Sequence record: ON287372.1
Length of the DNA: 64,000 bases
Reading direction: 5' to 3' (one strand)
Shown here: in pieces, positions 343 through 22,790 of the stretch
Layout of the letters: every line of letters begins with the position of its first letter
How positions within the stretch are numbered: position 1 is the stretch's first letter
The notes under the pieces: generated by a model
What the model saw: only the letters and a program-made list of their open reading frames with translations
What the model was told of the DNA's origin: nothing
The model's database searches: none
Position numbers and translations under genes: made by a program

Positions 343-352
343 AATGGTTCAC

Positions 353-2544: not shown

Positions 2545-2904
2545 TTAGAAATAACGATTGTAGAAACCACGAATATCATCTTCCGTGAAGAACATATAGA
2601 CCGCCTCTTCGTCAGCTACCCGAAACATGAGCCGATATTTGTCCTCGTAAATTTTACCGTAGATTTTAGTGTACTTACCATCAACCGCATCGCGGCCTCC
2701 GGCAGTCAGTCCCATCTCACGGTGCATTAAGGCGCAGAGGTCATGGAATTCAAAAGGTATGACTTGCTCGTATACTCTAAAGATCGCTGTTTCCAAATGA
2801 CGTTGCCATCTGTCAAACAACTGGATCATACTCGGGTTAGTGGTTTCTGGCCTGGTCATTAGCGCGGATCCCTTTAGTTGGCTTAACTTGCATACCAACT
2901 GCAA
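2545..2904 (-). CDS. Hypothetical protein
   Basis: 119-aa ORF in a minus-strand cluster of small genes; true start may be MTRPETT. Confidence 0.6.
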   Translation of the reverse strand: MQLVCKLSQLKGSALMTRPETTNPSMIQLFDRWQRHLETAIFRVYEQVIPFEFHDLCALMHREMGLTAGGRDAVDGKYTKIYGKIYEDKYRLMFRVADEEAVYMFFTEDDIRGFYNRYF

Positions 2905-3070
2905 CGATTACTGCGCCGGTCCAGATGAAAACGAGAATGGCGGCAAACGAGTAACCGAACTTACCCATGAGGGTAGGTTCTTTGAATGCGTCATATACGC
3001 AGGAACCAATACCACTCCAGCCAATGATCAGAATGATTGCGGAGATAATGTAGAAAGCTTTACGAGTCAT
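2837..3070 (-). CDS. Small membrane protein with two TM helices
   Basis: MTRKAFYIISAIILIIGWSGIG...FAAILVFIWTGAVIVAVG; GAGG RBS before ATG 3070. Confidence 0.65.
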   Translation of the reverse strand: MTRKAFYIISAIILIIGWSGIGSCVYDAFKEPTLMGKFGYSFAAILVFIWTGAVIVAVGMQVKPTKGIRANDQARNH

Positions 3071-3081
3071 CTTTTTGATCC

Positions 3082-3243
3082 TCAATAAATTAAGCGTATG
3101 CGCCGTTTTAAGCGCGAGATTGTTTTGGATGAGATATCATCCAGGTCTTCATGATTAAATGGAGCAGGGGGCTTTATAGGAAGTTTCCCGTTGCTATTTA
3201 ATCGGTTGTTTTCTCTTCTTCGCAGCCTACTTTTACCGGCCAT
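3082..3243 (-). CDS. Small basic protein, 53 aa (not in the ORF track)
   Basis: Read by hand: GAGAGG RBS, then MAGKSRLRRRENNRLNSNGKLPIKPPAPFNHEDLDDISSKTISRLKRRIRLIY*. The stop abuts the next gene's RBS. Confidence 0.55.
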   Translation of the reverse strand: MAGKSRLRRRENNRLNSNGKLPIKPPAPFNHEDLDDISSKTISRLKRRIRLIY

Positions 3244-3344
3244 AAAACACCTCTCAATAATGATGTCATGTTTAATTCATAATGAGAAAGTAATCTCATA
3301 TCTTATGAATTAACCAAAATTAAAACTTCATTAAGGTCAGCGCA

Positions 3345-3551
3345 ATGAATCAGTTAGTAGTAGAAACTGCACGTAAGATCTCCAACATCGTTCCTTCCAA
3401 AGCAAGCCCAGAGCTGAGCGTTATCCATTTCGAAGGCGGCACTAAAGAGTCGTTTATGAAATGGTTTATGGATCAACATAAGCCTGCAATTGGTAAGTTC
3501 ATGGTGAAAGACGTGGAAGGCTTTACTCAAGTTGTTGACAGCCTGAACTAA
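3345..3551 (+). CDS. Hypothetical protein, 68 aa
   Basis: TAAGG RBS, plausible codon usage, followed by a perfect palindrome. Confidence 0.65.
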   Translation: MNQLVVETARKISNIVPSKASPELSVIHFEGGTKESFMKWFMDQHKPAIGKFMVKDVEGFTQVVDSLN

Positions 3552-3557
3552 CATAAA

Positions 3558-3581
3558 GGAGAGTAGCCGCGGCTACTCTCC
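3558..3581. terminator. Perfect 24-bp palindrome between convergent genes
   Basis: ggagagtagccg|cggctactctcc. Confidence 0.65.
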
Positions 3582-3589
3582 CTATGCCG

Positions 3590-3796
3590 TTACATCGGTA
3601 CAAATTCCTCTTGGACCCAACCAAAAGGTACTACGTGAGAAAGCACGCCTTTCAGCTGCTCCTCTTTAGCCAGGTCTTCCCATGGAGGCGTACAATCACC
3701 GAGCAATTCAATTGCTTCCAATGCTAACGGCAGATTCTCGTTAGGCACTAAAGAAAGCGCCTCATGGATAGACTCAACAAAAACAGAACGTCCCAT
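3590..3796 (-). CDS. Hypothetical protein, 68 aa
   Basis: GGGAG RBS; ends at the palindrome. Confidence 0.6.
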   Translation of the reverse strand: MGRSVFVESIHEALSLVPNENLPLALEAIELLGDCTPPWEDLAKEEQLKGVLSHVVPFGWVQEEFVPM

Positions 3797-3860
3797 AGTC
3801 TATTAGCTCCCAAAGCTACAACGGATACAATGTCCATAGTAACCAAGGGAGCGTAAGACT

Positions 3861-4457
3861 TTAGAAGACGGTTATCTCGTTGTTCTTAACGTCGTAACGA
3901 GCGCTAACCATGCTCACGTCACCGTCAGTTTTGTAAACGTTGATAACCCAGGTGTTTTTACCCGGTTTGCTATCGAACTCACCGTGGTCGCATTTGACGC
4001 CTTCCAAGAAGAAGGGTTCTTTCTGCTCGTTGATGATTTCACAAACGCGAGTTGCCATAGCGTCATCTTCATTGGCTGAATCAACCAGACCCAGGGCCAT
4101 AATTGCAACCAGCAGGCCGGCGATGTAGAAGATGAAACCTTTGAAGTTCTCGAAACCACCTTGGCGAGTACGGATGATACGGACAATGCCCCAGACGATA
4201 GGGGATAGCAACATATTCACCCAGACAGTGGTTGGTTTATAACCAGCCGCGGCAACGGATTCGTTATCGCAGTGCGCCAGGTTAACGTTGACAACCAGAA
4301 GAACTACATACGCAACCATATTGACTGTATCGTTGTCGGATACGGCGACGATCATGGTAAATACCGCAAAGGCTGCGATCATGTAATAGAAGAAACGGTT
4401 GGAAACAGCGAAGATGGATTTAGGTTCGTTCTTTTCAATACCGGTTACGATAGACAT
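3861..4457 (-). CDS. Membrane protein (about four TM segments plus a C-terminal soluble domain)
   Basis: Hydrophobic stretches FFYYMIAAFAVFTMIVAV, MVAYVVLLVVNV, WVNMLLSPIVWGIV, FIFYIAGLLVAIMALGLV; AAGGA RBS. Confidence 0.7.
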   Translation of the reverse strand: MSIVTGIEKNEPKSIFAVSNRFFYYMIAAFAVFTMIVAVSDNDTVNMVAYVVLLVVNVNLAHCDNESVAAAGYKPTTVWVNMLLSPIVWGIVRIIRTRQGGFENFKGFIFYIAGLLVAIMALGLVDSANEDDAMATRVCEIINEQKEPFFLEGVKCDHGEFDSKPGKNTWVINVYKTDGDVSMVSARYDVKNNEITVF

Positions 4458-4521
4458 TTTTAATTCCTTGTTAATTAAGTTGGTTGTGTTTAGAATCGAG
4501 TTGGTGACTGGTTATTAACGA

Positions 4522-4878
4522 TTAATCTTCGCGAACTTTAACGGCAACAAATCTGGTAACTGACCCGGCGGCCGCTTTACGATCTAAGGACTTTTCTTCT
4601 TCCTCTTTGACTAAAGCATCAAAGTTAGCTTTTTCATCAATCTTTACCCGATACTCTTCATCGGACAAATTTTCTGCTTCGTAGAGATAAGATTTAACGA
4701 AGCGTTCCAGGTAGCTGTCCGTTTCGACTGTACTGAGTTGGTATTTGAGTTCTTCGATACGCTCTTGTCGCGTATGCGGATATGGGAGCTTGGTGCCGGC
4801 TGCCCGTTGGGACTCTAATACTACCGGATGGTGTTTGGAGCTGTAGTAAGCTTGGGAATGGCGGATATCGTTGTTCAT
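4522..4878 (-). CDS. Hypothetical protein, paralogue of 4913..5167
   Basis: AGGAGA RBS before ATG 4878 (MNNDIRH); contains TKLPYPHTRQERIEEL. Confidence 0.7.
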   Translation of the reverse strand: MNNDIRHSQAYYSSKHHPVVLESQRAAGTKLPYPHTRQERIEELKYQLSTVETDSYLERFVKSYLYEAENLSDEEYRVKIDEKANFDALVKEEEEKSLDRKAAAGSVTRFVAVKVRED

Positions 4879-4912
4879 GGTATTCTCCTGAAAGGTTTTA
4901 GGAATTGGTTTA

Positions 4913-5167
4913 TTAACTCTTGAAATGTTTATGTTCGTACTCGATCCTGCTCTGGTATTGCTCATCGGTAATCGACAATAAATCGAATATTTTACCACCG
5001 ATGAACTGCCTCAGAGTATAATCGTTGCCGGCCTCATCTGCCATAGCTCGGAGTTCATGATATCGCTCTATGCGAGTATGGGGATGAGGAAGTTTGGTTT
5101 TTATTTTACTTGGTGCTTCCCAGATAGTCGTTTTCTGATTAGGCCTTGGGTGGTTTTTAAGATCCAT
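4913..5167 (-). CDS. Hypothetical protein, paralogue of 4522..4878
   Basis: Contains TKLPHPHTRIERYHEL; GGAG RBS. Confidence 0.7.
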   Translation of the reverse strand: MDLKNHPRPNQKTTIWEAPSKIKTKLPHPHTRIERYHELRAMADEAGNDYTLRQFIGGKIFDLLSITDEQYQSRIEYEHKHFKS

Positions 5168-5175
5168 GGCAACTC

Positions 5176-5496
5176 CTATTTGGATTCTAATGCACCGATG
5201 ATAGTTTCAAGTTCCTCATTAGGTACAGAAACAACGGTACCTGCATCAAGGCCTTTAAAGACATTGACCCATGCATATGGCATGAGGTCTTTCATTTCAG
5301 GATTTTGCTCAGCAACCAAAGCCATAGTTTCAGCCAGGGCGAGTTCGTAAACTTCACGGATATCCTGAGTCAGGCTAACGGTGACCAGTTGACCACGGAA
5401 CTTCTCTGCAACTTCTGCATCGATTTCTTTGATTTTATTTTTCAGATCAGCAGCTGTAATACGAGTATTAGTGCTCATGATTTTTTCCTTATGCAA
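5176..5496 (-). CDS. Hypothetical protein
   Basis: 106-aa ORF; likely start MSTNTR after TAAGGA. Confidence 0.7.
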   Translation of the reverse strand: MHKEKIMSTNTRITAADLKNKIKEIDAEVAEKFRGQLVTVSLTQDIREVYELALAETMALVAEQNPEMKDLMPYAWVNVFKGLDAGTVVSVPNEELETIIGALESK

Positions 5497-5528
5497 TATT
5501 TGGTTTTTGTTATTAGTGGATAATTGAA

Positions 5529-5732
5529 TTACTTGGCTTCGGTCAGCTTACGATAAGTACACTGGAAGCAAATCTCGTTACCGGTCAAAGGCACAGTAGC
5601 GAGACGGTCGTGAACCTCGCCACAATGGGCGCAGTTGCATTTAATTGTGCGGGTGATATCAATGCCGCGTTTAAGATAAGTATCAGCCAGCATGTTGTAG
5701 GCTTCGTTAAATGACATAGCTCGAGTTTGCAA
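5529..5732 (-). CDS. Small putative zinc-binding protein
   Basis: CNCAHC...H...CFQC; AAGGAG RBS before a TTG start. Confidence 0.6.
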   Translation of the reverse strand: MQTRAMSFNEAYNMLADTYLKRGIDITRTIKCNCAHCGEVHDRLATVPLTGNEICFQCTYRKLTEAK

Positions 5733-5763
5733 GTGATGCTCCTTTTTATTAAAATGGAAAATA

Positions 5764-5789
5764 GAGCAGAGGACCGAAGTCCTCTGCTC
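5764..5789 (-). terminator. Intrinsic terminator
   Basis: gagcagaggac-cgaa-gtcctctgctc followed by a T-rich tract on the minus strand. Confidence 0.7.
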
Positions 5790-5927
5790 GTATAATGTTT
5801 TGGTCTAGCTTTTTCCGGAAGGGTTGACCTAACACCATTAAGTTAAAGTGAATGAATATGGGTGTCTTATGTCCTTATTCACGCAGGGTATATAGTTCTC
5901 AAATTATTTGGAAACGGCCGTAATTAA

Positions 5928-6724
5928 CTACATCGCTGAGTTGAAGTAGTTGTGGTAAAGATTACGGATAGTAACCCCATTCGGTGTGCCATCAGAGGCA
6001 GGATCAAATTGAGACATGTTGATACGCATTTGGATGTGCGTAGCCCAACGAGGATATGCGTCATTACCTGGGTCGCCACTGAAGGTATTTGAACTCACCA
6101 GAGGAAGACCGGAATTAGATGCGCGGGTAGCGGCTGCTTGTAGAGCGTCACTAACATCGTAATAAACTTCTTTACCTGACTCACGACTAGAGACTTTAAT
6201 CCCATAGTCAAAAAGATTAACTTCCTTAGTAACACGTTCCCAATACCAGTCTGTAGACGAAGTGATCAAATGACCACCATCATCCACTACATTACCTTGG
6301 CGAGCAATAAAACTACCACCACCGGTAGACTGAGTTTTGTCGTAGCTCTTAACGTTGACAATCTCACCGGTGTAATAAGGTGCCCGTTTGCGTAAGTCAG
6401 CGATAGTACTAACTGGGAGAATCATTGTCACGCCTTTGGCTGTCATGCGAGTAACCTTGTTACCCGAACCATCCATGACTTCCATAGCGCCGCCTGAAGT
6501 AGCGACGTATTCGTTTACTGCAACTTTTTCTGCTGAAGTATATTAGTAGCGGCAATACCTTCCGCTAAGGACATGAATGCATTCTCAAAGTTAATCGTAT
6601 TACGCAATTGCGTAAGCGTAACCTTATTGGTATCTGCAGAAGGATCCGCAGCAGGGAAGAAGTCTCCTTCCAGTACTGCAGCTTTTGCAGGTAACTCTGT
6701 AATCTTTTTCTGATATTCGCTCAT
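5928..6724 (-). pseudogene. Frameshifted and truncated tailspike gene (ORFs 6515..6724 and 5928..6485)
   Basis: The first ORF encodes the shared anchor (KKITELP...FENAFMSLAEG). The -1 frame from 6542 continues YTSAEKVAVNEY...MDGSG, matching YENSAKFAVLQY...GVDG of the paralogue. It then encodes a head domain (ADLRKRAP...GGGSF...DDGG) and stops without a full beta-helix. Confidence 0.75.
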
Positions 6725-6806
6725 GTCGCAACAACCTTAATAGTCTAGAACCGTCATAAAAAGCATTATAAAGCTCCGGTAGGTTTATCCCACCGGAGCC
6801 ATTATT

Positions 6807-9746
6807 TTAGCCTTTCGTTACTACGGTCGCTGGATCTGCTACATAACGCCAGTTAGTCCCGTCTGAATAGATCAGCTGGTCTTTAGGTGTCTTAGCCGTA
6901 TCCGTACAGGTAACAATCGCACGCTTAGCCAAAGACGCCCCTGGTAAGTTAGCGAAGGTGTATTCCTTGGTCACCATCCCGTTAGCAACAGTGCCTACGA
7001 ATGCGTAAGGGATCCACGCACCCGCAGCGTTCTTAACGTAAGCAACAGGCGTACCGTCTGGTGCAGTTGCCGAAACGTTTTTGTTAATCCAGATACTTCC
7101 ATTAGGGCGAGTACCATTAGGCGCTTGCTCGGTTGGAACTACGTTGGAATAAACTTCGTTAAAGTATTTACCTGAAGGGCGGAAATCAATCCCCCATTTG
7201 GTATCTACACTTACTGTCCCGTCAATTGCAGTACCGATAACTGCACCACCACCGCCAGAGGCGTTAAAGGTGAAGTCGCCAATACAGTGACCGCCAATGA
7301 ATCGTACGTTCTTAACATAGTTCACTACGCTATCGAACACGCAGTTACTGAAGTTAATATCTGGGAAGGAACCATCGTTATTCATCGACAATGCTTTCAT
7401 GACCGTGTTAGAGAACATCCCAGTATAAGACGGGTAGTTCCACGTCACGTTACCCAGACGGCAGTTATCCATCCACACACGAGAAGACGGGCCGAAGTAG
7501 CAATCAGTCAACCAGCTATTCTGAATGCTCATGGCAAACTCACGGTTAGACGACGCCAAACAAATCCCGCCACCACGAGTGGTATTGGAAATAGTGACGT
7601 TACCGTAACCGCTTGCGTAAACAAAACGTTCAGTTTCAGAGGACTGCATCGAATCGAGCAATACTTCTGAACTGGATGAACCATCTACCTGAATGAACAC
7701 ACGACCTGCAGTTTCAGGAGTAGTTCCGTTAACGAAGTTAGGGTCGTAGTATTTAAACTTGGACAGTGGACCGTTACGTTGTTCGCAGTGAATCTTAGAA
7801 ATCCACAGGCCGATACCACCACGGTAGTAAACGGTAGGAGATACGTTGTTAGCTTCCCATTGACCGCCCTGGAAACGCAGCATGTTCGATGCATCACCAC
7901 TTTTACTGGAGATGATGTGGATTGGCGCAAAGGTAGTCTTAGTCAAGTTGACCAAGTCTGCGTAAGTCGCATAGTCACCCGAAGTACGGCCACACATCTG
8001 GACTTCCAGGAAGTTGTAATAGCCATCCTGCACCTGATCCAGTAACAGACCAGCACCTTTAAAGTTCTCTATCTTCAGACTATCAATTTCAGGGTACCCT
8101 ACGTTACGCATGTAGAGTCCGTGCAGCACTTTGCCACCACCCAAGATAGAGAAACCTTTCAGTGCTACACCAGAATAGGTGAAGTCGGTATCTTTATCGA
8201 TAGTGATGCTGAGCACCGCAGTAGTGGCGTCATTAAAGTCACCGCCCATCCATTGCAATACCGCACGACCAGTATGGGTCGAGTCTGCGTACAAAGAGAA
8301 CCCTTTGTTTGCCTGGATGACAATCGGAGTACGGATACCAAAATACTGGCTCGGTACTTTGATAGGCTGGAAGGAACGAGAGTACTGGATGTTCTGAATA
8401 AACGGGCCGTTATCTACAACAGAGTTATCGCAACCACCATCCCACAGTGTCAATGCACGAAGATCTTGACGATACCAAACGGTATTATCGTCGTAACGAA
8501 TAGTAGTATAGCCGCCATCGTCAAGAACCGTTGTATTGGTTGCAGAAACGAAACGACCACCGCCATTCATTTTACCCGCGTAATACTCACGGACATCGAC
8601 GATCTCATTGTTACCTTTAGGTTTGGTAGCACGCAATGCGGCCATAGTAGGGATGGTACGGATACTTGCTAAGCCTTTAGGGGTCAGGTTAACAACTGGA
8701 GTACCCGATTCATCAGTTACCACACCAGCGCCATTGAATCGCTCTACGTTAACGTAACTGAAAAGAGACTGATATTGGTACTGAAGATAAATGCCGCGAC
8801 AAGTACTCAAGTTCCCCAGCAATTGGATGTTACTAATCTCAATACCGGCGAAGCCAGCTTCCATTGCATTGGTAGTAGGGTTACGGCCAGGGAAGTGCAA
8901 TGCGCCGTAGGTTTCGTAACCAGGGCCAATCTGAACAGAGATCGTCGTGGAGTCTTTAACGCCGCAGCCACGCAGTTTAATCCCGCAGTTAGTCTGGAAC
9001 ACAATCGGGGAACGAATAACGATTGGGTTAGCATTACTGCCTTGAGGAAGCATCAGGATCTTCTTACGAGAAGCATCAGCAGCTTTCTTCAGCGCCTGGG
9101 CATTATCTGCCTGTGAATAGTGGACACCCCACCATTCGGCTTGGTTGGTAGATGTATCTACAATAGCACGTTTCCAACGAGCTGCGCCTGGAGTCACTGC
9201 TACAGTACCGCCGTTGTCCACAGTAGTTTTATCTGCTGGGTCATGGAAGAACTCACCGCCACCATAGTTAGCGCCCTCACGATAACCCGTGACAAGGACA
9301 CGCTGACCTGGGAAATAGGGTTCAGTTGCTCTGAGTTCATCGAATGACTTAATCTGTCCAATCAAACCAAACCCGATACTGGAGCGAATCTGTTCCAGGT
9401 TTTTAATGAGTTCTTTGGTAGGTTCCTTTACTTGCTTACCGTTAACATCCAGAACAGGTGAAGCAATACCGCCCATGTTAACATAGCGGTAAACATATTC
9501 TTTGCTCGAGTCTACAAATGAGAAGAATTGCTGACCTTTAATAGTGGCCGCAACCCCGTCGTTAATATTCGAATAAGCATTACCGTAGTCCATCAACTTG
9601 CGTAGTTCGCCGATGGAAACTTTCTGAGTTTCTAATTGATCTACTGAAACGATACGGGATGCTGGGATGATATCGCTATCATTAATCCCAGTATTACTGC
9701 TATCCGGTAGCTGCGAAATTTTACTTGAGGTATTATCTGCCATCAC
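6807..9746 (-). CDS. Tailspike/depolymerase, apparent fusion of two spike modules
   Basis: Shared anchor, two ELRAT/ALRAT...GGG.F...D[ND]GG head domains, a partial beta-helix, then a full beta-helix. Confidence 0.8.
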   Translation of the reverse strand: MMADNTSSKISQLPDSSNTGINDSDIIPASRIVSVDQLETQKVSIGELRKLMDYGNAYSNINDGVAATIKGQQFFSFVDSSKEYVYRYVNMGGIASPVLDVNGKQVKEPTKELIKNLEQIRSSIGFGLIGQIKSFDELRATEPYFPGQRVLVTGYREGANYGGGEFFHDPADKTTVDNGGTVAVTPGAARWKRAIVDTSTNQAEWWGVHYSQADNAQALKKAADASRKKILMLPQGSNANPIVIRSPIVFQTNCGIKLRGCGVKDSTTISVQIGPGYETYGALHFPGRNPTTNAMEAGFAGIEISNIQLLGNLSTCRGIYLQYQYQSLFSYVNVERFNGAGVVTDESGTPVVNLTPKGLASIRTIPTMAALRATKPKGNNEIVDVREYYAGKMNGGGRFVSATNTTVLDDGGYTTIRYDDNTVWYRQDLRALTLWDGGCDNSVVDNGPFIQNIQYSRSFQPIKVPSQYFGIRTPIVIQANKGFSLYADSTHTGRAVLQWMGGDFNDATTAVLSITIDKDTDFTYSGVALKGFSILGGGKVLHGLYMRNVGYPEIDSLKIENFKGAGLLLDQVQDGYYNFLEVQMCGRTSGDYATYADLVNLTKTTFAPIHIISSKSGDASNMLRFQGGQWEANNVSPTVYYRGGIGLWISKIHCEQRNGPLSKFKYYDPNFVNGTTPETAGRVFIQVDGSSSSEVLLDSMQSSETERFVYASGYGNVTISNTTRGGGICLASSNREFAMSIQNSWLTDCYFGPSSRVWMDNCRLGNVTWNYPSYTGMFSNTVMKALSMNNDGSFPDINFSNCVFDSVVNYVKNVRFIGGHCIGDFTFNASGGGGAVIGTAIDGTVSVDTKWGIDFRPSGKYFNEVYSNVVPTEQAPNGTRPNGSIWINKNVSATAPDGTPVAYVKNAAGAWIPYAFVGTVANGMVTKEYTFANLPGASLAKRAIVTCTDTAKTPKDQLIYSDGTNWRYVADPATVVTKG

Positions 9747-9822
9747 TGATATTCCTGGCTGGTTGCAAGATTGTCATATGAACAAACATAGGCCAGGGGC
9801 AATTAAGTCCCTGGCCGTATGG

Positions 9823-11955
9823 CTAGATGATATTATTCTGGGTAATTGTAGAGCCTGAGCCCACTTGCACTTTACCCGTACTACCTGCAGCCAGACGACT
9901 GTTGGTAATCAAAACGTTTGCGTTGTTGGCATCAGAAGTGATGTCGTAAAGTGGCTTCACTGCACCTGTAGAGGACGATACGCCAGTCAGAATACTATTA
10001 CGAACACCCAGTAAACGGATTGGGTAATACGTACCAGCAGTCTTGACCCCAGCATCGTTAATGTTGAAGCTAACGTTACTCTCAATGAGTCCATTCAGGG
10101 TCATGCCGTGTTCTGGAATATTAACCAACTTAACATCCATATCAGAGTAACGACAGTTCACTGCTTCGAATGCATCTTGAGCAGGGGATTCGATGTAGAA
10201 GTCTAAGTCAAGGTTATTGCAGTTAGAGATAGTAACACCACGACGTTGGCCATTAATCAAACGGATCTTACCGGTCACTCGATTACTGTCTGTGATATTA
10301 ACACCATTGAGCGTTTTAGTAGTAGAAACATTCTCTGCTACTAAATCAATAGAGCCGCTCGAGTTAGTAATGATCAGTGCCGAACCCGCTACATCAGTAA
10401 CGCGACCAGTAAACTGGAAGTTGCTACAGTTGGTAATTTCAACCGCAGTAACGTTACCCGTAGTTTGAGTAGTTACGACGTTATCCAACAGAACTGGCTG
10501 ATAGAGATCACGAATACCGATGACAGTACGCAGTGTGTTCTCAAATACGTTACCAATTGCCTTAATCCCTTTAATGAGATCTTTAGCTGCAATGAAGTCA
10601 GGGTTAACTGTGCCGAAGCCAAAACCGCCATAGCAGTTAATGAAGTAATTGTTCAGGTAAGTACCATAACTGGCTTCATCAGCATTCTTGGTATCTTCTG
10701 CATTGTTTGCAATGCCTGCGCCTTTCTTGCCATTACCGATATTAATGAATCGGCAACTCTTGACTAAGGTATTACGGCCTTTGTTAACAATCCCGTCGCC
10801 GTAGTAGGTACCGTCACGGTGAGCTACCTGCGCACTGTTAGCAACAGTACACTCGATGAACTGAGTCTCGTTACAACCACCGCGTACAGTTACTGAATCC
10901 TCTCCAGCTGACAGGAATGAACAACGATAGAACGTATTACGGGACGAGCCAGATTGCAGCCCGAGATTATCGAACTTACCGTTCTTGAATACTACGGAAC
11001 TGAACGTACAGTCACTCCAGTTATCCAGTGTATTCTCAGCAAACTCGAAGCCTAATGCACCGGTGGTATCGGTGTAGTCGACATCAATAGTTAGGTCACG
11101 GAAAACTAACCCGCTAATACCCGTTGTGCCATTTGTTATATCATTAGCTACGCCGGCTGCGGTAGTCGGAGAAGTAATGAATGGGATTTTATTCCCATTA
11201 CCTTTAAACTTGATGGTAGCTCCATTGCCAATCCAACCACCACCTGAGTAATGACGTACAGCCGAGCTGTAATAATAAGTCTTACCTGGGGATAATGAAA
11301 TCGGCCCTACTTGGGCTTTCTGAGCAGCACGCATGGCAATGGTATCATCAGCTTGGCCGCCACCGAAATCTTCAAGGGAGAATGAAGTTTTATTTCGTTT
11401 CCAGTGGTAGCCAGTACCAGAAGCAACACTACCGCCATTATCGGCTAAGTCACTCAAATTACTGATAAATTCGCCACCACCCAAAGAGCTACCCGTAACA
11501 TAACCGGCCAGGATGATTCGCTGACCCGAGTACTCTGGTTTAATAGTACGTAATCTGGCGAAATTATCCACCATGCCTACAACACCGAACCCTAACTCAC
11601 GAGTGATGTCAATCCCGGCTTGGATAGAGAGGTAGGTAGGGAACCGACGTTGTTTACCATCTACCCCTAAAACGGGAGAAGGCGAGCCAGCAGTTTTAAC
11701 GTACTGCAATACGGCAAACTTTGCGGAGTTCTCATAAACGAAGAATGACTCGCCATTGTCTACAGAAGCCAATCCTTCTTGTACGGTACTGGCCGCATTG
11801 CTAAAGTAAATACCTTCACGAATGTCGTACAATGAAGCGATGCTGGTCTGAGTAAGTTTAGAGTCTTTCGTGTTGATCGTAAACTTATCGTTCTCCGATA
11901 CAGCCTTTTTTGGTAACTCTGAAATCTTAGTGTATTTAATTGGGGAGATTGGCAT
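9823..11955 (-). CDS. Tailspike/depolymerase (beta-helix)
   Basis: Anchor YTKISELP; head domain ARLRTIKP...GGGEF...ADNGG; SLEDFGG cap; Asn/Ser/Val-rich beta-helix rungs. Confidence 0.8.
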   Translation of the reverse strand: MPISPIKYTKISELPKKAVSENDKFTINTKDSKLTQTSIASLYDIREGIYFSNAASTVQEGLASVDNGESFFVYENSAKFAVLQYVKTAGSPSPVLGVDGKQRRFPTYLSIQAGIDITRELGFGVVGMVDNFARLRTIKPEYSGQRIILAGYVTGSSLGGGEFISNLSDLADNGGSVASGTGYHWKRNKTSFSLEDFGGGQADDTIAMRAAQKAQVGPISLSPGKTYYYSSAVRHYSGGGWIGNGATIKFKGNGNKIPFITSPTTAAGVANDITNGTTGISGLVFRDLTIDVDYTDTTGALGFEFAENTLDNWSDCTFSSVVFKNGKFDNLGLQSGSSRNTFYRCSFLSAGEDSVTVRGGCNETQFIECTVANSAQVAHRDGTYYGDGIVNKGRNTLVKSCRFINIGNGKKGAGIANNAEDTKNADEASYGTYLNNYFINCYGGFGFGTVNPDFIAAKDLIKGIKAIGNVFENTLRTVIGIRDLYQPVLLDNVVTTQTTGNVTAVEITNCSNFQFTGRVTDVAGSALIITNSSGSIDLVAENVSTTKTLNGVNITDSNRVTGKIRLINGQRRGVTISNCNNLDLDFYIESPAQDAFEAVNCRYSDMDVKLVNIPEHGMTLNGLIESNVSFNINDAGVKTAGTYYPIRLLGVRNSILTGVSSSTGAVKPLYDITSDANNANVLITNSRLAAGSTGKVQVGSGSTITQNNII

Positions 11956-11970
11956 CTTAGTTCTCTCAAT

Positions 11971-11998
11971 AAATAAGGGGCCGGAGCCCCTTTATTTT
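11971..11998. terminator. Bidirectional terminator-like hairpin
   Basis: aaataaggggc-cgga-gcccctttatttt. Confidence 0.6.
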
Positions 11999-14303
11999 AT
12001 TTAACTTTCCAGAATACAGGGAGCTTAACTTCAATCGATCCAGTGAAGCCGTTGATACGGAAACCAAACGAAGCAGTCTTGGTTGCGTTCCAAACTGTAG
12101 AGGTTAATGGTGGCGTGGAGATGAAGTCGTTAATACCTAACGGGGTGTTGGTTTCAGTCAATGCTTCGGACAGTAAGAAGTTACGGTCAGCAGTAGTCCC
12201 TAGTACCGGGTAGGTGGTTGTAATTGCGATGTTGTCATCGACTGAGTTTTTCTTACCCGTGATAACCGGGTCATCAAAACATCTAGCGATACCTGTAACC
12301 TTTACATCACCCGTAGCAATACCCTGTTTAACTGAGATCATCGTGTTGAACATGTCGCGAGGTAATACAGGTACACGTTCAGGGAATACAAGATCGATCT
12401 CGGCAGTATTGGCACTAGAGTTGATGATTAGAGTTTGAAGCCCATCATCACCTACCGCACCATAAGTCACAGTGACGGTACCATTACGCGTAATGAAACT
12501 AATCCCTGTGCTGGTTTCTGGGCTGGTTACCGTATTGCCTGCTGTGCCGGTGAACTTGTAGCGACGGTTGTCTGCCACGTTATAACTGATCAAGTAACAA
12601 GGATCGGTACGTGACATATTCACGATAACTGAACCAGTTACAGTAGTGTTGTCATTAGTCTTACCCCAACCAGTTAACGTACCATAAGTTTTAGTTCCTT
12701 TATTACGGAAGTTAATTGGGGAATTCTGGAAGCTAACGTAAAACGCACCCAGCTCCCCGTCAAGGATCTTACGTGGAGGACTGAATGGTTTAGTCGCATA
12801 GACAGCGTAAACTTGGCTATTGACGAAATAGAACTTCTGACCTGTACCCGTCCATTTGTCAGGTTGGTTAATCAGGTAACCGTCAAACCCTTCAAGGTGA
12901 CAGTTAGTTAATTTAACCCAACCGTGCGTGGTCGATTTACCCAGGAAGAATACATCGCCATTCTGGTAATCGAAGCTACAGTTATCGAAAGCAATCTCAA
13001 ACGCAAAGATATCCATGATAACGTTGTGAGATGTGGTGTCGCTGAAGGTACAGTTGTGGAATGCAATTTTCTCACCGGCATTACCGGAGCCGGTCCCTTT
13101 GAAGTAAAGGGAAGTTTCATTTCGTGCGCAGAATACACGATCGAAAAGGTTCAAGTAGCTATCAACACCGTCGTGGCGTAGACCGTATTTGAACCCTACG
13201 ATAGTCACGTTAGCGACCCGTACATCGCGACAGTTAACAAACCCTTTCGCTGTGTTACCCAACCAAACGCCGTGCATGGTAGAAACGCCAGCGCCTCGGC
13301 CTTTCACAATTACCTTACCAGGGCAATCGATAACAGTTACACCGTTAGATTGCGTGTTGTACCACTTGATAAGGTTAGCATCAGTCGCACCAGGGAATTG
13401 AGTGTTGTCAATGACGATACCGTCAATATCCCTTCCTGAGAAATCCAGGAGAGTAGTGCAAGTGAATTGCAAACCGATGAAGCTTGGGAGTTTAATCGTT
13501 TCATTCATGGTGTAACTAGCCAACCCAGTCGACGGATTAACACCAGGAACAATCAGATGGGAGAAAGTACCGAATGTACCAACGTTGGCAATTGCCAAGT
13601 TAACCATCGCACGGACACCTTTGTTAATTGTCTCCGCAAGGTTTTTCATTGCCGGTACGAAACCGAATACCATGACATTCACACCAGCTGAAGTATCCAG
13701 AACCCAGACCTTACCTTCATTGGTAGCGACACGCAATACTCCATCGATTGGGCCATCGTGGTAAGTATTGTCGTAGTAGTAGATCATGTTCAGTGCAGGA
13801 CCGCCTTCTACGGCGTGCTCTACAATAATGCTTTGCTGTGGCTTTGTAGGCTCCACTGAAGCTAAGTCTGCAATGTATGCAACCTTACCTAGGTCTTTAT
13901 AACCATCGCTCTTCAGGATCCCATTAATTCCTTTTGCAGAACGAGGGGTCGGATAACTAATTTGTTTACCGTCCTCGCCAATAACAGGTTCAGCAACCGA
14001 ACCCATTTTCAGATATTTAACTACGTTGACTTTACTCTCATCCTCAAAGACGTAAAACGCTTCGTTATCATTAGCGAAAGTAAGTCCGGTCGCAACATCT
14101 TTAAACGCATTATCGAAGTTGAAGCTACTTCTCAGATCATCAACTGTCGCGCCCTTAGTGATTGGTTTTCCGCCAGTGGTAGTATTGTTCAAAGGGATAA
14201 CATCAGTTTCACGTACGTTGTTGACTTTCCCTAATTCTGATATCTTAACTTGCTGTACCATTTCAGAATACCTTAGATTCGTTGTAGATTTCATAGGAAA
14301 CAA
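11997..14303 (-). CDS. Tailspike/depolymerase (beta-helix); likely start ATG 14261
   Basis: Anchor VKISELG...FDNAF; VNVMVFG cap; F.NC.F rung repeats; C-terminal carbohydrate-binding-like region. Confidence 0.8.
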   Translation of the reverse strand: MFPMKSTTNLRYSEMVQQVKISELGKVNNVRETDVIPLNNTTTGGKPITKGATVDDLRSSFNFDNAFKDVATGLTFANDNEAFYVFEDESKVNVVKYLKMGSVAEPVIGEDGKQISYPTPRSAKGINGILKSDGYKDLGKVAYIADLASVEPTKPQQSIIVEHAVEGGPALNMIYYYDNTYHDGPIDGVLRVATNEGKVWVLDTSAGVNVMVFGFVPAMKNLAETINKGVRAMVNLAIANVGTFGTFSHLIVPGVNPSTGLASYTMNETIKLPSFIGLQFTCTTLLDFSGRDIDGIVIDNTQFPGATDANLIKWYNTQSNGVTVIDCPGKVIVKGRGAGVSTMHGVWLGNTAKGFVNCRDVRVANVTIVGFKYGLRHDGVDSYLNLFDRVFCARNETSLYFKGTGSGNAGEKIAFHNCTFSDTTSHNVIMDIFAFEIAFDNCSFDYQNGDVFFLGKSTTHGWVKLTNCHLEGFDGYLINQPDKWTGTGQKFYFVNSQVYAVYATKPFSPPRKILDGELGAFYVSFQNSPINFRNKGTKTYGTLTGWGKTNDNTTVTGSVIVNMSRTDPCYLISYNVADNRRYKFTGTAGNTVTSPETSTGISFITRNGTVTVTYGAVGDDGLQTLIINSSANTAEIDLVFPERVPVLPRDMFNTMISVKQGIATGDVKVTGIARCFDDPVITGKKNSVDDNIAITTTYPVLGTTADRNFLLSEALTETNTPLGINDFISTPPLTSTVWNATKTASFGFRINGFTGSIEVKLPVFWKVK

Positions 14304-14308
14304 TATAA

Positions 14309-14330
14309 GGAGAGAGCCGAAGCTCTCTCC
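14309..14330. terminator. Stem-loop between tailspike genes
   Basis: ggagagagc-cgaa-gctctctcc. Confidence 0.55.
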
Positions 14331-14337
14331 TCTTGTA

Positions 14338-16554
14338 TTACCAAACGCGTGTGTTGAGGTCTTTACAAACGCCGACTTCGCAAGCGTAGAAATCAGTGAT
14401 CTCTAGTACCGCAGGCGCATCTCCCGCATTGATACCGAAACCGTAGATTTCAATAGCTACACGAACCCATTCAGTCCCCGCTGGGGAAAGTGGCAGATAT
14501 TCAGTAGTACCCAATTGGGTCATTCGAATACCTGGGGTAAGTTTAGGCGTAGTAGTGATCCCGCTCAACTGGTTCGTCCAGGTTTGTCGTTGTTCACCCA
14601 GGGTAGTGATGCTGTTATCCTGGGCTACGTACCCTACAGTAGAGTAGCAGTTAGTGGATACTTTAACTTCAGGCATTTCCCGGTTACCGTTCACGGATAG
14701 CTGTGAGCCATACCAGTTACCCGCTTTAGCCTTAGCGAAGAAGCTAATAGTCTTGTTAGCCCTGGTGGTGTCAGATGAAGTAACTACCAGTTTATTACCC
14801 GAAGTAGAGATCTTGAAGAGCGAAGTCTCAGTTGGGGATACGGCAGTACCGCCAGTCAGGCGAGGACGGTTAATGGTCAAGTAACCGACGTTATTTGGGT
14901 TAGGGGAGATCAGAATGTTCGCACCTTTGCCCAACGTATAGTTACGCCACATGTCCTTATAACGACCAGGATAGGATTCGGTCATCTTAATGAAGCAACC
15001 GTTAGTCCATTGACCGTTGAAGCGAGTGATATCCGGGTTTGGTACCAGGAAGCCATGGAGATAAACTTGCGATGACAGGTCGGTAGACGTATCTTCGAAG
15101 TAGTAGTTATGGATCAGGTGCGGGGTAGTTTCGTTCGGCTCTACGGTGCTAGAGTGAGTCAGAATCCACTGGCACTCGTAAAGTTTGATGATACCGCTGC
15201 CGCGCCATACTGGTCCAGTCCAACGGCTGTTCAGGTTACCGTATTCATTACCGCAACCATACATCAGAACAGTACAGTTATCGATATTGAACAGGCCTTC
15301 TTTATCGGCGTTGGCGTTTTGATCTGCTTCGGTCTTGTAACCGGAGTAGTCAAATGAACAGCCGTGGAAAGTCATCGCCATACCCGTATTCAGGTAGGGA
15401 CCAATGCCATCACCGAAGATACACTTAGTCCACACCAGAGTTTCCCCGGCGTTAGCGGACTTAGGTGCGTTGATTGCCAGACGTACGCCTTGAGTGGTGC
15501 ACTGGAACCAGTTGTTCAGGTAGCAGTTATCACCCAGATCCCATGCGATGTCATGACGGTTGATCGAGATGTTGTTGAAGTTCAGGAAGGCTGCGGACAA
15601 CCCATGGATGTTACCAGAGGTTGTTGATACGTTGATGCCTTTCTGTTTCTTCGCCACCGCAGAAACCATACGCAGGTTGCTCAGCGTAGAGTTACGGTGA
15701 CCGTAAACTACCGAGATGTTAGTCTGGCCATCTTTCGCTTCGGTGAAGTCCAGCATGGTACCACGGAAGTCCCAGCTGACGCCCCACATGCGCAACCAGA
15801 TCTCGGTCTTACATTTACGGACGCCACCTGGACCTACCATAGTCAGGTACGTCGGAGTAGACGGAGTCCAAGTCTGCCACCACTCGGTACCTTTGACCTC
15901 TACGTACTCACCGGCTTTCATTACGGTAAGTGCATAGTCAGATGCGTGAAGGATCGGATCGAAGAACCAGTCGATTTCAATGTTACCACTGGAAACATCA
16001 CGCTTGAAACGTTCACCGGTTTTGGTAACTATGCACATCACACCGTCATCAGCTGTGGTACGGTCATTGGCGTCGTAAATCCATTCACCACCGTTTTTGT
16101 ACTGAACACCGTTCAGGCGGAAGTTACGCATACGGACAATCTGACCGTCAATGGATGGCGCCTGAGCACGGAGCTGATCCAAAGATGCTACGGTAACAGA
16201 CTGCTCACCGATTGCCAGCATATAGAGCGGGGTAGCCCAACGACGAGGCTGACCAGATTTGTCTAGAATAACTTCAGACACGCCATTTTTGTTAATGTAA
16301 CCGTTAACAAAGCGCTTAGAGTTATCGGTGAATACATAGAAGCGTTCTTCAGGGTAAGTGCCTGTCAGACCTTCTGGGATGGAATTGAACGCATTATCAA
16401 AGTCCAGGGCAGCTCGAAGGTCACCGACCGTACTTGCAACCGTTTCTGGATTATTGGTTTTGATTTGCGAAATAGGGGTTAAGTCGGCATCATTGATCGG
16501 ACGCGTTACGCGCGGGAGTTCCGAGATTCGATTCCCTAAGCTTGAGTTAGCCAT
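14338..16554 (-). CDS. Tailspike/depolymerase (beta-helix)
   Basis: Anchor NRISELP...FDNAF; head domain DQLRAQAP...GGEW...DDGV; beta-helix rungs. Confidence 0.8.
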   Translation of the reverse strand: MANSSLGNRISELPRVTRPINDADLTPISQIKTNNPETVASTVGDLRAALDFDNAFNSIPEGLTGTYPEERFYVFTDNSKRFVNGYINKNGVSEVILDKSGQPRRWATPLYMLAIGEQSVTVASLDQLRAQAPSIDGQIVRMRNFRLNGVQYKNGGEWIYDANDRTTADDGVMCIVTKTGERFKRDVSSGNIEIDWFFDPILHASDYALTVMKAGEYVEVKGTEWWQTWTPSTPTYLTMVGPGGVRKCKTEIWLRMWGVSWDFRGTMLDFTEAKDGQTNISVVYGHRNSTLSNLRMVSAVAKKQKGINVSTTSGNIHGLSAAFLNFNNISINRHDIAWDLGDNCYLNNWFQCTTQGVRLAINAPKSANAGETLVWTKCIFGDGIGPYLNTGMAMTFHGCSFDYSGYKTEADQNANADKEGLFNIDNCTVLMYGCGNEYGNLNSRWTGPVWRGSGIIKLYECQWILTHSSTVEPNETTPHLIHNYYFEDTSTDLSSQVYLHGFLVPNPDITRFNGQWTNGCFIKMTESYPGRYKDMWRNYTLGKGANILISPNPNNVGYLTINRPRLTGGTAVSPTETSLFKISTSGNKLVVTSSDTTRANKTISFFAKAKAGNWYGSQLSVNGNREMPEVKVSTNCYSTVGYVAQDNSITTLGEQRQTWTNQLSGITTTPKLTPGIRMTQLGTTEYLPLSPAGTEWVRVAIEIYGFGINAGDAPAVLEITDFYACEVGVCKDLNTRVW

Positions 16555-16659
16555 TAATACCTCTGCCAGTAAATCTGGAGTGTCGTAACAAAAAAGAAAG
16601 AATTACATATGAACATAGACTCTCCTAGACCATGACGGCCTAGGAGAGCAACTATGCGA

Positions 16660-17226
16660 TTAGTTACCGCCTTGCTCAGCAACCAGGAACTTATCGTTCT
16701 CAGTTGTGATCGCCTTACCGGACTCAGTAAGGATTGCGCCGCGTGGCATTTTCATACCGCCGGTGATGGTGATATCCAGGTTACCACTCCAGACGTGGGA
16801 GTTGTAATCAGTACCCGCTTTGGTTTGCACGGTGATAACTTTACTTTCGCCTTCAGGGATGAATGGCAGCAGCTCAGTGGAGTTTGCTACGTCGACTTCA
16901 TCGATGAAGATTTTGTATTTAGTCTGCAGCAGGGGCAGAGTATCTGCGATGGTGTTTGCAGTCTCTGGCAGGATCAGGGACGGGCCCTGGGCGCCCAGCA
17001 GTTTGTTCAGATCGATACGGGTGTAAGTGAATACACGTTGACCGCTGTAAGGGCTACGACCAGTTACCGTTACGCTGATGCGTTCTTCAGTACCAGGGAC
17101 AGTAGCGGACTTTACATCACCGAAAGTCAGATAGCTGGCATTCAGTGCCGGGGTCACGTTGTTCTGGGCAGTAATGAGGTCAGCGAGGATCTCAAATTTA
17201 GGACGTCCGAATAACTCAACGTACAT
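16660..17226 (-). CDS. Baseplate/tail-fibre adaptor-like protein
   Basis: FTYTRIDLNKLL...LQTKYKIFIDEVDV domain shared with 353..2404 and 1..342; C-terminal ILTESGKAITTENDKFLVAE peptide. Confidence 0.65.
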   Translation of the reverse strand: MYVELFGRPKFEILADLITAQNNVTPALNASYLTFGDVKSATVPGTEERISVTVTGRSPYSGQRVFTYTRIDLNKLLGAQGPSLILPETANTIADTLPLLQTKYKIFIDEVDVANSTELLPFIPEGESKVITVQTKAGTDYNSHVWSGNLDITITGGMKMPRGAILTESGKAITTENDKFLVAEQGGN

Positions 17227-17270
17227 GGGTAAACTCCATTGAAATAAAACTTTTAGTTCAGCTCATAGAA

Positions 17271-17837
17271 TTAGCAGATGCCAAACATTGCTTCGAATGC
17301 TTTCTTAGGAAAATTAAGAGGGCGAGTATCCTTTGCCTTCATCTTTTCAAAAGGAGAAATATAGCAAGTTGCGACTAAACTCTGATCACCACACTCCATT
17401 GCGATAAACAATACGTTGTCACTCCGATAGCCATAGACATCAAAGATGGCGTCCTTAGACTTTGCCGCCTTACCCGCCAGGTATTTGTACCCTGGGAATA
17501 AATCCTCCACAGCACGACCGAATTCCTTATCCATTTTCAGGTTAGGTATTTCGCGATACTCCCCTTCGGTAATACGGCGATTAACCAAACACAGTCGACG
17601 GTTAGGTTCCATCATCTGACGAGGCGTGTGCATAAAGAGCTCATGAACGACGTGGGTCAATTGACTAACGTTGGTGTCGTAAAGCTCACAAAGTGGCTTC
17701 AGCGTACTGCACAGTCGTAAATGCTCCATGAACAGAATCGGGTTGAGTTTAATCGTATCCTTCAACCGTTCACGATCTTCATTTACTTTCCTTTTCTCTG
17801 TGCCCGGTTCTCCTGGGCGGCGAGTGGTGACTGCCAT
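17271..17837 (-). CDS. Hypothetical protein
   Basis: 188-aa ORF overlapping the upstream gene by 55 nt; followed by the adaptor gene. Confidence 0.7.
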   Translation of the reverse strand: MAVTTRRPGEPGTEKRKVNEDRERLKDTIKLNPILFMEHLRLCSTLKPLCELYDTNVSQLTHVVHELFMHTPRQMMEPNRRLCLVNRRITEGEYREIPNLKMDKEFGRAVEDLFPGYKYLAGKAAKSKDAIFDVYGYRSDNVLFIAMECGDQSLVATCYISPFEKMKAKDTRPLNFPKKAFEAMFGIC

Positions 17838-22076: not shown

Positions 22077-22790
22077 TCACCAGCGCTTTATAAATGAATT
22101 AATGTCATAGGAAAGTAGATGAGCCTTGGACTGCTTGGAGACATTGAATTTCTCTGGTGCAAGTTTCTCAACCACGAGATCTTCTCTTCGGAACTTTTCC
22201 TCGAAGTACGAGTTCAGGTTCGGAATAATCACTCTCCAATACCCAGGATACAGTGTCAGGTGCCGGTCGAAAATCATCGGGCCTTTTTCCACATGTAAAT
22301 AGATCTCTGGGATAATGGTTTTGTCTTCCGTTAACATAACGTCGTTAATGAAGAACTTACCAACAGCCGTAGGGATGTAAGGTTGACTCGGCCCCTCGTA
22401 AGGGACTAACCATCTTTCCTCACACCACTTCGAGATAGGCGCCATACGCGGACTAGGCTTTAAGGCGATCTCGGCCGGGATGGAATAGATGGTGTAGCCA
22501 CCTAACCAATCATCGTCACCAGCACAAGTGGCTTCTTTTTTAAGGAAGTCGTTAATCGCCACGGCATAGCCGCGCAGGCAATCCAGTAAACCGACCCCCG
22601 TGCAAACACGAGGGACGTATTCATCTTCTCCCTTCATCGTCCGTTGAATTGGACGAGGGATGAACTCTCGAATAGTCGGGTTAGGTGAAATGTGTAACAG
22701 TACTGGATTACTGCGATCAATCTCCAACCCTTCGATAACGTAAGGCGGAAACTTTAACAAGTAATCCATTAACCCGAGTTCGGCGTCCAT
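22077..22790 (-). CDS. Hypothetical protein in the vRNAP/protease operon
   Basis: 237-aa ORF tightly coupled to both neighbours. Confidence 0.75.
   Translation of the reverse strand: MDAELGLMDYLLKFPPYVIEGLEIDRSNPVLLHISPNPTIREFIPRPIQRTMKGEDEYVPRVCTGVGLLDCLRGYAVAINDFLKKEATCAGDDDWLGGYTIYSIPAEIALKPSPRMAPISKWCEERWLVPYEGPSQPYIPTAVGKFFINDVMLTEDKTIIPEIYLHVEKGPMIFDRHLTLYPGYWRVIIPNLNSYFEEKFRREDLVVEKLAPEKFNVSKQSKAHLLSYDINSFIKRW

Follow-up and report, generated by a model that had tools for sequence, protein, structure and literature searches.

A probable tailspike row on one anchor family, contracted by deletions, in the Serratia jumbo phage Totoro

The 64,000-nucleotide (nt) stretch of sequence record ON287372.1 analysed here (the window) carries a row of large genes on the minus strand between positions 5928 and 16554. 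We propose that this row, contracted by deletions, is with good probability the receptor-binding (tailspike/depolymerase) locus of a phiKZ-like jumbo myophage of Serratia and an orthologue of the phiKp24 tail-fibre cluster. Window bases 5500-17500 were 100% identical to ON287372.1, the record of Serratia phage vB_SmaS-Totoro (hereafter Totoro; window position x is record position x minus 124000), which belongs to the genus Moabitevirus, has a genome of 278,767 bp and grows on Serratia marcescens LVF3. Totoro has been described as a myovirus, with 314-fold sequence coverage and dimensions from transmission electron microscopy, in a report that does not mention its spikes (PMC10070969). The surroundings of the row are phiKZ-like and include a prohead protease, virion RNA polymerase subunits and a gp181-like tail lysozyme.

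Shared N-termini and divergent bodies

When the four intact array proteins (738, 754, 710 and 978 amino acids (aa)) were compared pairwise by BLASTP, their first 150-230 residues aligned at 27-35% identity (expectation value (E) 7e-12 to 7e-30), and beyond this N-terminal region their bodies gave no mutual alignment. All four also matched the N-terminal ~190-220 positions of the profile phrog_27731 (E 3e-19 to 3e-37). These results bear out a first-pass annotation of this DNA, made from the sequence alone, which had proposed a tandem array on a common N-terminal family. Aligning the proteins split the shared region into an anchor of ~110 aa, which the broken gene at the distal end of the row has in common with the others, and a pre-helix domain of ~80 aa. 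The 100-120 shared residues of the first-pass annotation thus fall short of the whole shared region, which also takes in the pre-helix domain. This second domain is clear in three of the four intact spikes, with a GGG..F/DDGG signature, and divergent in the 754-aa protein. It precedes the beta-helix in solved depolymerases (Depo32, WceF and the AM24 tailspike) and was matched to them at E 1e-6 to 3e-14. More precisely, the match of spike 1 to the AM24 tailspike profile (5w5p) spans the pre-helix domain, that of spike 2 to CBA120 TSP2 (5w6p, E 1.4e-7) is restricted to the pre-helix part, and the pre-helix domain of spike 3 matched the Depo32-type depolymerases 7lzj, 7vyv and 7vz3 (E 3e-14) as well as Pantoea WceF (6tgf). 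The ~80-aa domain is what Totoro has in common with Depo32, the AM24 tailspike and WceF; the bodies and extreme N-termini are not detectably related by sequence. Single-sequence PDB searches with the 738-, 754- and 683-aa proteins gave nothing useful, and profiles recovered pre-helix domains only. Judged by their domain order, the array genes have the modular build of tailspikes, namely an N-terminal part, a pre-helix domain and a body.

A profile of the five Totoro anchors, searched against 1.84 billion proteins, found 130 clusters at 50% identity, of which 115 had E <= 1e-10. With two exceptions the anchor match begins within the first 13 residues, most of the proteins having 570-1350 aa. 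AlphaFold modelled the anchor with confidence (predicted local distance difference test score (pLDDT) 85). A fold search of the PDB yielded no solved relative (best E 0.28): its SH2-like matches were at chance level, and a T4 gp10-like or other known adaptor fold was unsupported by this search. Significant fold matches were found among predicted viral structures, to fibre proteins of Moabitevirus and phiKp24 and to unnamed entries. Furthermore, anchor identity between phages (Totoro versus Kodama, another Moabitevirus) is 58-92% for matching array positions, and anchors from different positions are 27-36% identical. The anchor copies may therefore be old paralogues with docking places of their own, and the "one anchor" of the first-pass annotation is better described as one anchor family.

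Spikes 1, 2 and 3 (Table 1) are 84%, 72% and 76% identical to Kodama_01200, Kodama_01210 and Kodama_01220, respectively. A precomputed PF27114 (Phage_tail_beta) match exists for the 738-aa spike 1, and the body of spike 2 is 26-28% identical over ~650 aa to phiKp24 RefSeq gp110 and gp109. Two gene starts given by the first-pass annotation had to be moved. Spike 2 starts at ATG 14261 instead of 14303 (754 aa, matching the annotation and the orthologues; the TTG-extended open reading frame (ORF) enters a hairpin), and the 978-aa gene starts at ATG 9743 instead of 9746, as annotated and as in orthologues. Six modules had been counted in the row. The internal second module of the 978-aa gene, with its own pre-helix domain and body, stood up to analysis, and the number of complete bodies in the array is four, as one of the two modules in the 978-aa gene has been cut to a stump and the remnant is bodiless. 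The spike locus also extends past the range considered at first, to window positions 1-2404, where two further intact spikes of a second class (DUF7941) bring the whole locus to six (4 array + 2 DUF7941-class). As a side observation, the body of spike 1 (14338-15957) has full-length homologues of 605-606 aa (31-33% identity) in chromosomes of Serratia entomophila, S. bockelmannii and S. proteamaculans, one cluster of which holds 236 sequences on 89 contigs; presumably these are prophage or tailocin spikes that share a receptor-binding body with the jumbo phage.

Contraction of the row by deletions inside genes

Synteny comparison with Kodama, BUCT660, 2050HW and Moabite confirmed the contraction that had been suspected. 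The Kodama row encodes proteins of 738, 754, 710, 670, 1284, 731, 729, 833 and 605 aa, followed by a small-gene island, two further spikes (683 and 688 aa) and a dUTPase; Kodama was isolated on LVF3 like Totoro, from the same sewage. Totoro has 738, 754, 710 and 978 aa and a remnant, then the island, spikes of 683 and 686 aa and the dUTPase. The Moabite row reads 738, 806, 710, 691, 1347, 731, 729, 672, (95) and 605 aa, that of BUCT660 738, 754, 710, 670, 1284, 1001 and 605 aa, and 2050HW matches the Kodama set except that three of its spike genes are split or truncated. The other Moabitevirus rows thus agree with Totoro in genes, order, flanks, hairpins or terminators and DUF7941 spikes; they have 7-9 row genes including a double-module spike of 1284-1347 aa, whereas Totoro is without five of the bodies and alone has the 978-aa chimera. 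On this comparison the Totoro row is the most contracted version known. The retained Totoro spikes are 72-87% identical to those of Kodama and the flanking genes 69-94%, so the spikes are no more diverged. The breaks in 2050HW (754-type into 345 + 389 aa, 729-type into 61 + 662 aa, 833-type to 421 aa) may be either real decay or sequencing errors.

Roughly the first third of the 978-aa protein corresponds to the Kodama 670-aa spike (83%) and comprises its anchor, pre-helix domain and the start of its body. The rest corresponds to the 729-aa spike minus its anchor (85%), with a second pre-helix domain and a complete body, and its alignment to phrog_27731 takes in almost all 688 profile positions. 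In the DNA, the stretches matching the two parents abut without overlap, the frame is kept and ~7.5 kb present in Kodama are missing. The parents have no notable similarity at the joint (best local score 10 over 28 aligned nt). Because they are dissimilar there and the matches do not overlap, collapse of a repeat is unlikely, and an origin of the large deletion by homologous recombination among the repeated anchors is unsupported. The alignments show instead one illegitimate in-frame deletion: the 670-type gene lost its back and the 729-type gene its anchor, and the 1284-aa and 731-aa genes in between disappeared entirely.

The distal gene had been called pseudogenised, and this was upheld: it has suffered one frameshift and one large internal deletion. 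Its 69-aa ORF represents about the first 60 residues of the anchor and its 185-aa ORF the pre-helix domain. The remnant is a mosaic, in which the anchor is closest to the eighth gene of Moabite (66%), the pre-helix domain to the eighth gene of Kodama (63%) and the last ~100 residues to the C-terminus encoded by the final, 605-aa gene of the related rows (42-43%). This second Totoro deletion is also in frame and reads on to the shared stop. Compared with Kodama, non-synonymous divergence (dN) is 0.30-0.53 in the remnant ORFs, 3-5 times that of the intact genes, with a ratio to synonymous divergence (dN/dS) of 0.2-0.3; the chimera has a dN of 0.11-0.12 and a dN/dS of ~0.07 in both parts, and its intact neighbours a dN of 0.09-0.22. 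By these values, which are rough since dS is saturated between Totoro and Kodama, constraint is relaxed in the remnant and intact-like in both parts of the chimera.

Fusion is not peculiar to Totoro. The 1001-aa gene of BUCT660 (L008, 10998-14003) joins the front of the 731-aa gene (98.7%) in frame to the back of the 833-aa gene (99.1%; identities to Kodama), body to body, with the intervening 729-aa gene lost, and is an independent deletion chimera. In addition, the 1284-aa spike of Kodama (L004, 5619-9473) has two pre-helix domains, at about residues 120-195 and 691-766, and two-module spikes are thus an established form in the genus. Between Kodama and Moabite (1347 aa, likewise in 2050HW), the front 818 residues of this spike are 89% identical and the back half is swapped. 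The proteins of Moabite and Kodama are otherwise 96-99.9% identical, yet their bodies differ at positions 2, 4 and 8 and in the back half of position 5, each swap sitting behind a retained N-terminal region. Turnover of spikes in the row is thus real and fast, with its boundaries inside genes.

Homology to the phiKp24 fibre cluster

The anchor was found on seven phiKp24 genes (RefSeq gp101, gp103-107 and gp112); three spikes of that row are anchorless. BLASTP aligned the N-termini of the Totoro spikes with the seven fibres at E 1e-8 to 4e-30 and 28-47% identity, Foldseek matched the anchor model to phiKp24 fibre proteins at E 1.5e-8 and 1.1e-7, and the 69-aa remnant ORF alone matched phiKp24 by tblastn. 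The pre-helix domain is also common to Totoro and phiKp24 (vB_KpM_FBKp24, Maaswegvirus; gp294-gp313 in PMC9700779 are RefSeq MOC16_gp100-gp119), as is the order of the 188-aa DUF7941 gene, the row, the small-gene island, two DUF7941 spikes and the dUTPase. Two metagenomic contigs (L010 and L011) have the same locus plan. The homologous anchor on seven fibres and the syntenic flanks therefore make the phiKp24 likeness noted in the first-pass annotation one of homology, beyond mere resemblance, and the two clusters are probably orthologous. One-to-one orthology of single anchors was merely hinted at by an unbootstrapped neighbour-joining tree and was not relied on. The phages differ in host (Klebsiella for phiKp24, Serratia for Totoro) and in number (14 proposed fibres versus 4 + 2 intact spikes); part of the row is inverted in phiKp24, and the chimeric and broken genes occur only on the Totoro side. 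One phiKp24 fibre has a Peptidase_S74 chaperone domain, which Pfam detected in none of the Totoro spikes.

In phiKp24, cryo-electron tomography (cryo-ET) revealed a branched multi-fibre apparatus at the baseplate, and 14 fibres were proposed to form a hyperbranched bundle with gp306 as the primary and gp301 as the secondary branching fibre, owing to long N-termini with T4 gp10-like folds (PMC9700779). We found that RefSeq gp107 (gp306 if the numbering is colinear) has an insertion of ~180 residues between the anchor and the pre-helix domain; the latter begins ~200 residues further along than its counterparts in Totoro. Moabitevirus has been reported as the genus nearest to Klebsiella jumbo phages of ~300 kb, two of which, at 93.4% genome similarity, have 9 + 3 versus 5 + 4 fibre genes and infect 6 versus 21 of 22 strains (PMC10265529); this pair is the best published hint that changes in fibre-set content are linked with host range.

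Several tailspikes per virion, with N-terminal attachment modules and bodies for specificity, also occur in Ackermannviridae (CBA120 TSP1-4) and phage G7C. Those phages use a hierarchy of different adaptor domains, whereas the Totoro genes are paralogues with one anchor family, and the anchor model matched none of their N-terminal domains (XD / gp10-like) in the PDB. The Klebsiella phages K64-1 and RaK2 likewise have many side-by-side depolymerase-type spikes (PMC9700779, in part); they are of an unrelated lineage, and no sequence link to the Totoro anchor was found.

Hairpins and a promoter-like motif

Stable hairpins lie 3' of the stop codons of five genes, the 188-aa gene and the four intact spikes, and one more is situated downstream of the remnant (-14.1 to -27.3 kcal/mol, z-scores -2.4 to -8.4; Table 1). 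The first-pass annotation had seen most genes separated by a hairpin and had taken this as a sign of modular exchange. The hairpins do follow all intact genes, but as borders of exchange cassettes they were rejected: hairpins are common regionally (36 terminator-like ones across the 18.5 kb scanned versus 15.5 expected), and the three deletion joints and four body swaps in the genus all fall within coding sequence, not at hairpins. We read them as terminator-like punctuation of transcription; the Moabite and phiKp24 records carry annotated terminators at comparable gene borders.

The motif TTYMTATGWMA has five matches in the window versus 0.56 expected. Four lie 30-50 nt upstream of the starts of structural genes (three spike genes, in which it stands just past the preceding hairpin, and the prohead protease); the remaining match falls within an RNA polymerase gene, on the other strand. 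The motif was built from three of its own five matches, and one of the other two is well placed. TATG-type late-promoter elements are known from phiKZ, and TTYMTATGWMA could be such an element, which we offer as a lead only.

Table 1. Features of the spike locus, in window positions (strand as in the window)
Feature	Position	Strand	Remarks
188-aa DUF7941 protein	16660..17226	-	conserved, directly upstream of array; Pfam PF25613 E 1.7e-11, phrog_2935 E 6e-35
Hairpin after 188-aa gene	16620..16648	-	-27.3 kcal/mol, z -8.4; then promoter-like TTCATATGTAA upstream of spike 1
Spike gene 1, 738 aa	14338..16554	-	anchor ~16225-16554, pre-helix ~15955-16203, then body
Hairpin after spike gene 1	14307..14332	-	UUCG loop; -20.6 kcal/mol, z -5.8; then TTCCTATGAAA
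Spike gene 2, 754 aa	11997..14261	-	anchor ~13932-14261, divergent pre-helix domain, then body
Hairpin after spike gene 2	11975..11992	-	-14.1 kcal/mol, z -2.4
Spike gene 3, 710 aa	9823..11955	-	anchor ~11626-11955, pre-helix ~11356-11604, then body
Hairpin after spike gene 3	9791..9816	-	8-bp stem, 10-nt loop; -20.8 kcal/mol, z -4.8; then TTCATATGACA
Chimeric spike gene, 978 aa	6807..9743	-	reading frame intact; 670-type front + anchorless 729-type remainder
Hairpin after chimeric gene	6773..6799	-	-23.6 kcal/mol, z -6.7
Broken spike gene (remnant)	5928..6724	-	two annotated ORFs, 69 + 185 aa; anchor + pre-helix, no body
Hairpin downstream of remnant	5764..5789	-	UUCG loop, U-rich tail; closes array; -22.2 kcal/mol, z -7.4
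Island of ten small genes	2545..5732		function unassigned; between two spike classes
Second-class spike, 683 aa	353..2404	-	annotated "pectin lyase"; DUF7941 N-terminus instead of array anchor, hydrolase-like body
Second DUF7941-class spike TOTORO_01880, 686 aa	1..342	-	first 114 codons in window, remainder beyond edge
TTYMTATGWMA matches	9772-9782, 14289-14299, 16603-16613, 22103-22113	-	
TTYMTATGWMA match	31838-31848	+	

Discussion

On the proposed reading, each spike would be built of three parts: an N-terminal domain of ~110 aa with a clade-specific fold, by which the spike would be attached either to another spike or to the baseplate complex; a short pre-helix domain like those of solved depolymerases; and a body that differs by gene and would, as a trimeric beta-helix, bind or cleave a surface polysaccharide. 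Each gene would be its own late transcription unit, ended by a terminator hairpin and, in three cases, preceded by a TATG-containing motif, and the virion would be expected to bear several different spikes at once, as in phiKp24. As comparison with the relatives shows, the row evolves by replacement of bodies behind a kept N-terminus and by deletions jointed inside genes. In Totoro, an in-frame deletion of ~7.5 kb made the chimera and a second deletion with a frameshift cut the distal genes to a stub, with four complete array spikes and two DUF7941-anchored spikes as the outcome.

Several points weigh against this reading. The location of the spikes in the Totoro virion and the attachment role of the anchor are conjectured from homology. 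Pfam-A gave zero matches on the array genes of Totoro and Kodama; among the array genes and seven relatives, its sole matches were to DUF7941 (second class and 188-aa protein) and Peptidase_S74 (the one phiKp24 fibre). The full-length model of the chimera has a mean pLDDT of 55 and is good only for residues 1-250; pLDDT falls under 50 in both the stump and the second pre-helix domain, and the second body, although strand-rich, reaches only 50-70. The top 23 PDB matches of this model in Foldseek are all tailspikes or spike-like depolymerases, but they are weak (E >= 1e-3, template modelling (TM) score ~0.1), so the models at most faintly suggest a beta-helical fold of the bodies. Binding or cleavage of polysaccharide by the bodies is likewise presumed. 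The saturation of dS blurs the ratios on which constraint is judged. Alignment showed the long N-terminal insertion of gp107 in none of the Totoro array genes; the 1284-aa gene is lost as well, and the spike complex of Totoro may be unbranched. Lastly, Totoro and the nine-gene Kodama were both isolated on LVF3. Since both grow on this strain, the lost spikes are dispensable there, and the remodelling of host range suggested in the first-pass annotation, for which sequence turnover is the sole basis, did not hold up as stated; an effect of the contraction on host range may be supposed from the altered gene content.

The fate of the chimera admits another view, namely that it is a dead by-product, its truncated first body a bar to correct folding or trimerisation, and too young to have decayed, and that three array spikes and the two DUF7941 spikes do the work. 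The chimera is found only in Totoro (it and both remnant ORFs are singleton clusters among ~15 billion proteins), its model is poor through the stump and junction, and the equal constraint in both its parts could predate a recent deletion. We nevertheless hold this to be unlikely. The frame is open over 978 codons with the join in frame, neither half has an excess of non-synonymous change such as that of the remnant, and the upstream motif and both flanking hairpins are intact. Moreover, BUCT660 has kept an analogous in-frame chimera, the genus keeps two-module spikes of 1284-1347 aa, and the low pLDDT may stem merely from a poorly aligned input alignment. Most likely, the chimera still works as a spike in which the 670-type anchor bears the 729-type body and the stump acts as a spacer.

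An assembly or sequencing artefact in a repeat-rich region is a very remote explanation of the chimera and the frameshift. Repeated N-terminal sequence is indeed common to the row genes, and the split spike genes of 2050HW could be sequencing errors; the Totoro assembly, however, has 314-fold coverage, the parents lack notable similarity at the chimera joint, and the remnant is strongly diverged along its whole length and not at one base. It is also improbable, if somewhat less so, that the shared N-terminus is a leftover of duplication, for example a trimerisation or chaperone-binding module, and that some or all of the proteins are soluble enzymes freed at lysis. An anchor fold with no solved relative in the PDB would suit such a view, as would the failure of Pfam, PHROGs and the anchor fold search to return a T4 gp10-like docking family. 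Yet the anchor sits at the very N-terminus in essentially all cases and persists through body swaps, which is the pattern of particle-binding domains of tailspikes; its copies are conserved by array position across phages, its phiKp24 homologues have been modelled as fibres within the branched structure that cryo-ET revealed, and neighbours in the row are annotated as structural in Moabite and 2050HW. The reading as a row of virion spikes is therefore preferred.

The three deletions in the genus (two in Totoro, one in BUCT660) are all in frame, with a chance of ~1 in 27. It is conceivable, though we would not favour it at present, that in-frame deletion fusions are a regular, tolerated or even selected way to re-mount receptor-binding bodies in this clade, the stump serving as a stalk for a complete second spike on another anchor position, and that the 1284-1347-aa spikes of the relatives are older products of the same process. 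A multi-spike apparatus of the phiKp24 type is already known; the in-frame chimeras and the anchor of unsolved fold are what is worth following. One anchor domain and one locus plan tie the phiKp24 fibre apparatus to the whole phiKZ-like Serratia/Klebsiella jumbo-phage clade, and the anchor is small and well predicted, with its docking partner the missing piece in models of the fibre bundle. Related genomes with 9, 7 and 4 spikes form a natural series for asking which spikes are dispensable and how rows shrink, here by frame-keeping joints inside genes rather than by loss of cassettes at borders. They also bear on how a spike repertoire is read from sequence: counting anchors or ORFs gives six in the Totoro array, and counting complete bodies gives four.

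Second spike class and neighbouring genes

DUF7941 (PF25613) occurs three times in the locus, as the stand-alone 188-aa protein and as the N-terminal ~150 residues of two spikes, and it may be a second attachment module or a docking partner of the array anchor. The 188-aa protein is 92% identical to its Kodama counterpart and 67% to phiKp24 gp099, and is annotated as "virion structural protein" in Moabite, 2050HW and phiKp24. The 683-aa spike matches PF25613 on residues 1-148 (E 4e-19) and phrog_32409 and phrog_16653 with its body; it is 87% identical to Kodama_01370 and 40% to phiKp24 gp118 over its full length. The position of the small-gene island is kept in Kodama, BUCT660, Moabite, phiKp24 and a metagenomic contig. 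Within it, TOTORO_01980 (100 aa, 5176-5478, minus strand) had no counterpart in the Kodama loci by tblastn, and the neighbouring small genes are 53-93% identical.

Record names differ from the reading given here in two respects. ON287372.1 labels three spikes "amylovoran biosynthesis protein", a misleading name inherited from AmsF-like matches, and GenBank calls the phage vB_SmaS-Totoro (S for siphovirus), whereas the paper describes the myovirus vB_SmaM-Totoro. Upstream of the row, the virion RNA polymerase beta-type gene (25263-31469, minus strand) is split into parts of 1128 and 363 aa, which flank a 413-aa ORF. The ORF matching the latter is annotated as an HNH endonuclease in Kodama and a putative endonuclease in 2050HW, BUCT660 has only a gap there, and the Moabite counterpart of the split gene is a single 4.5-kb ORF; the split looks like an insertion of the homing-endonuclease or intron type.

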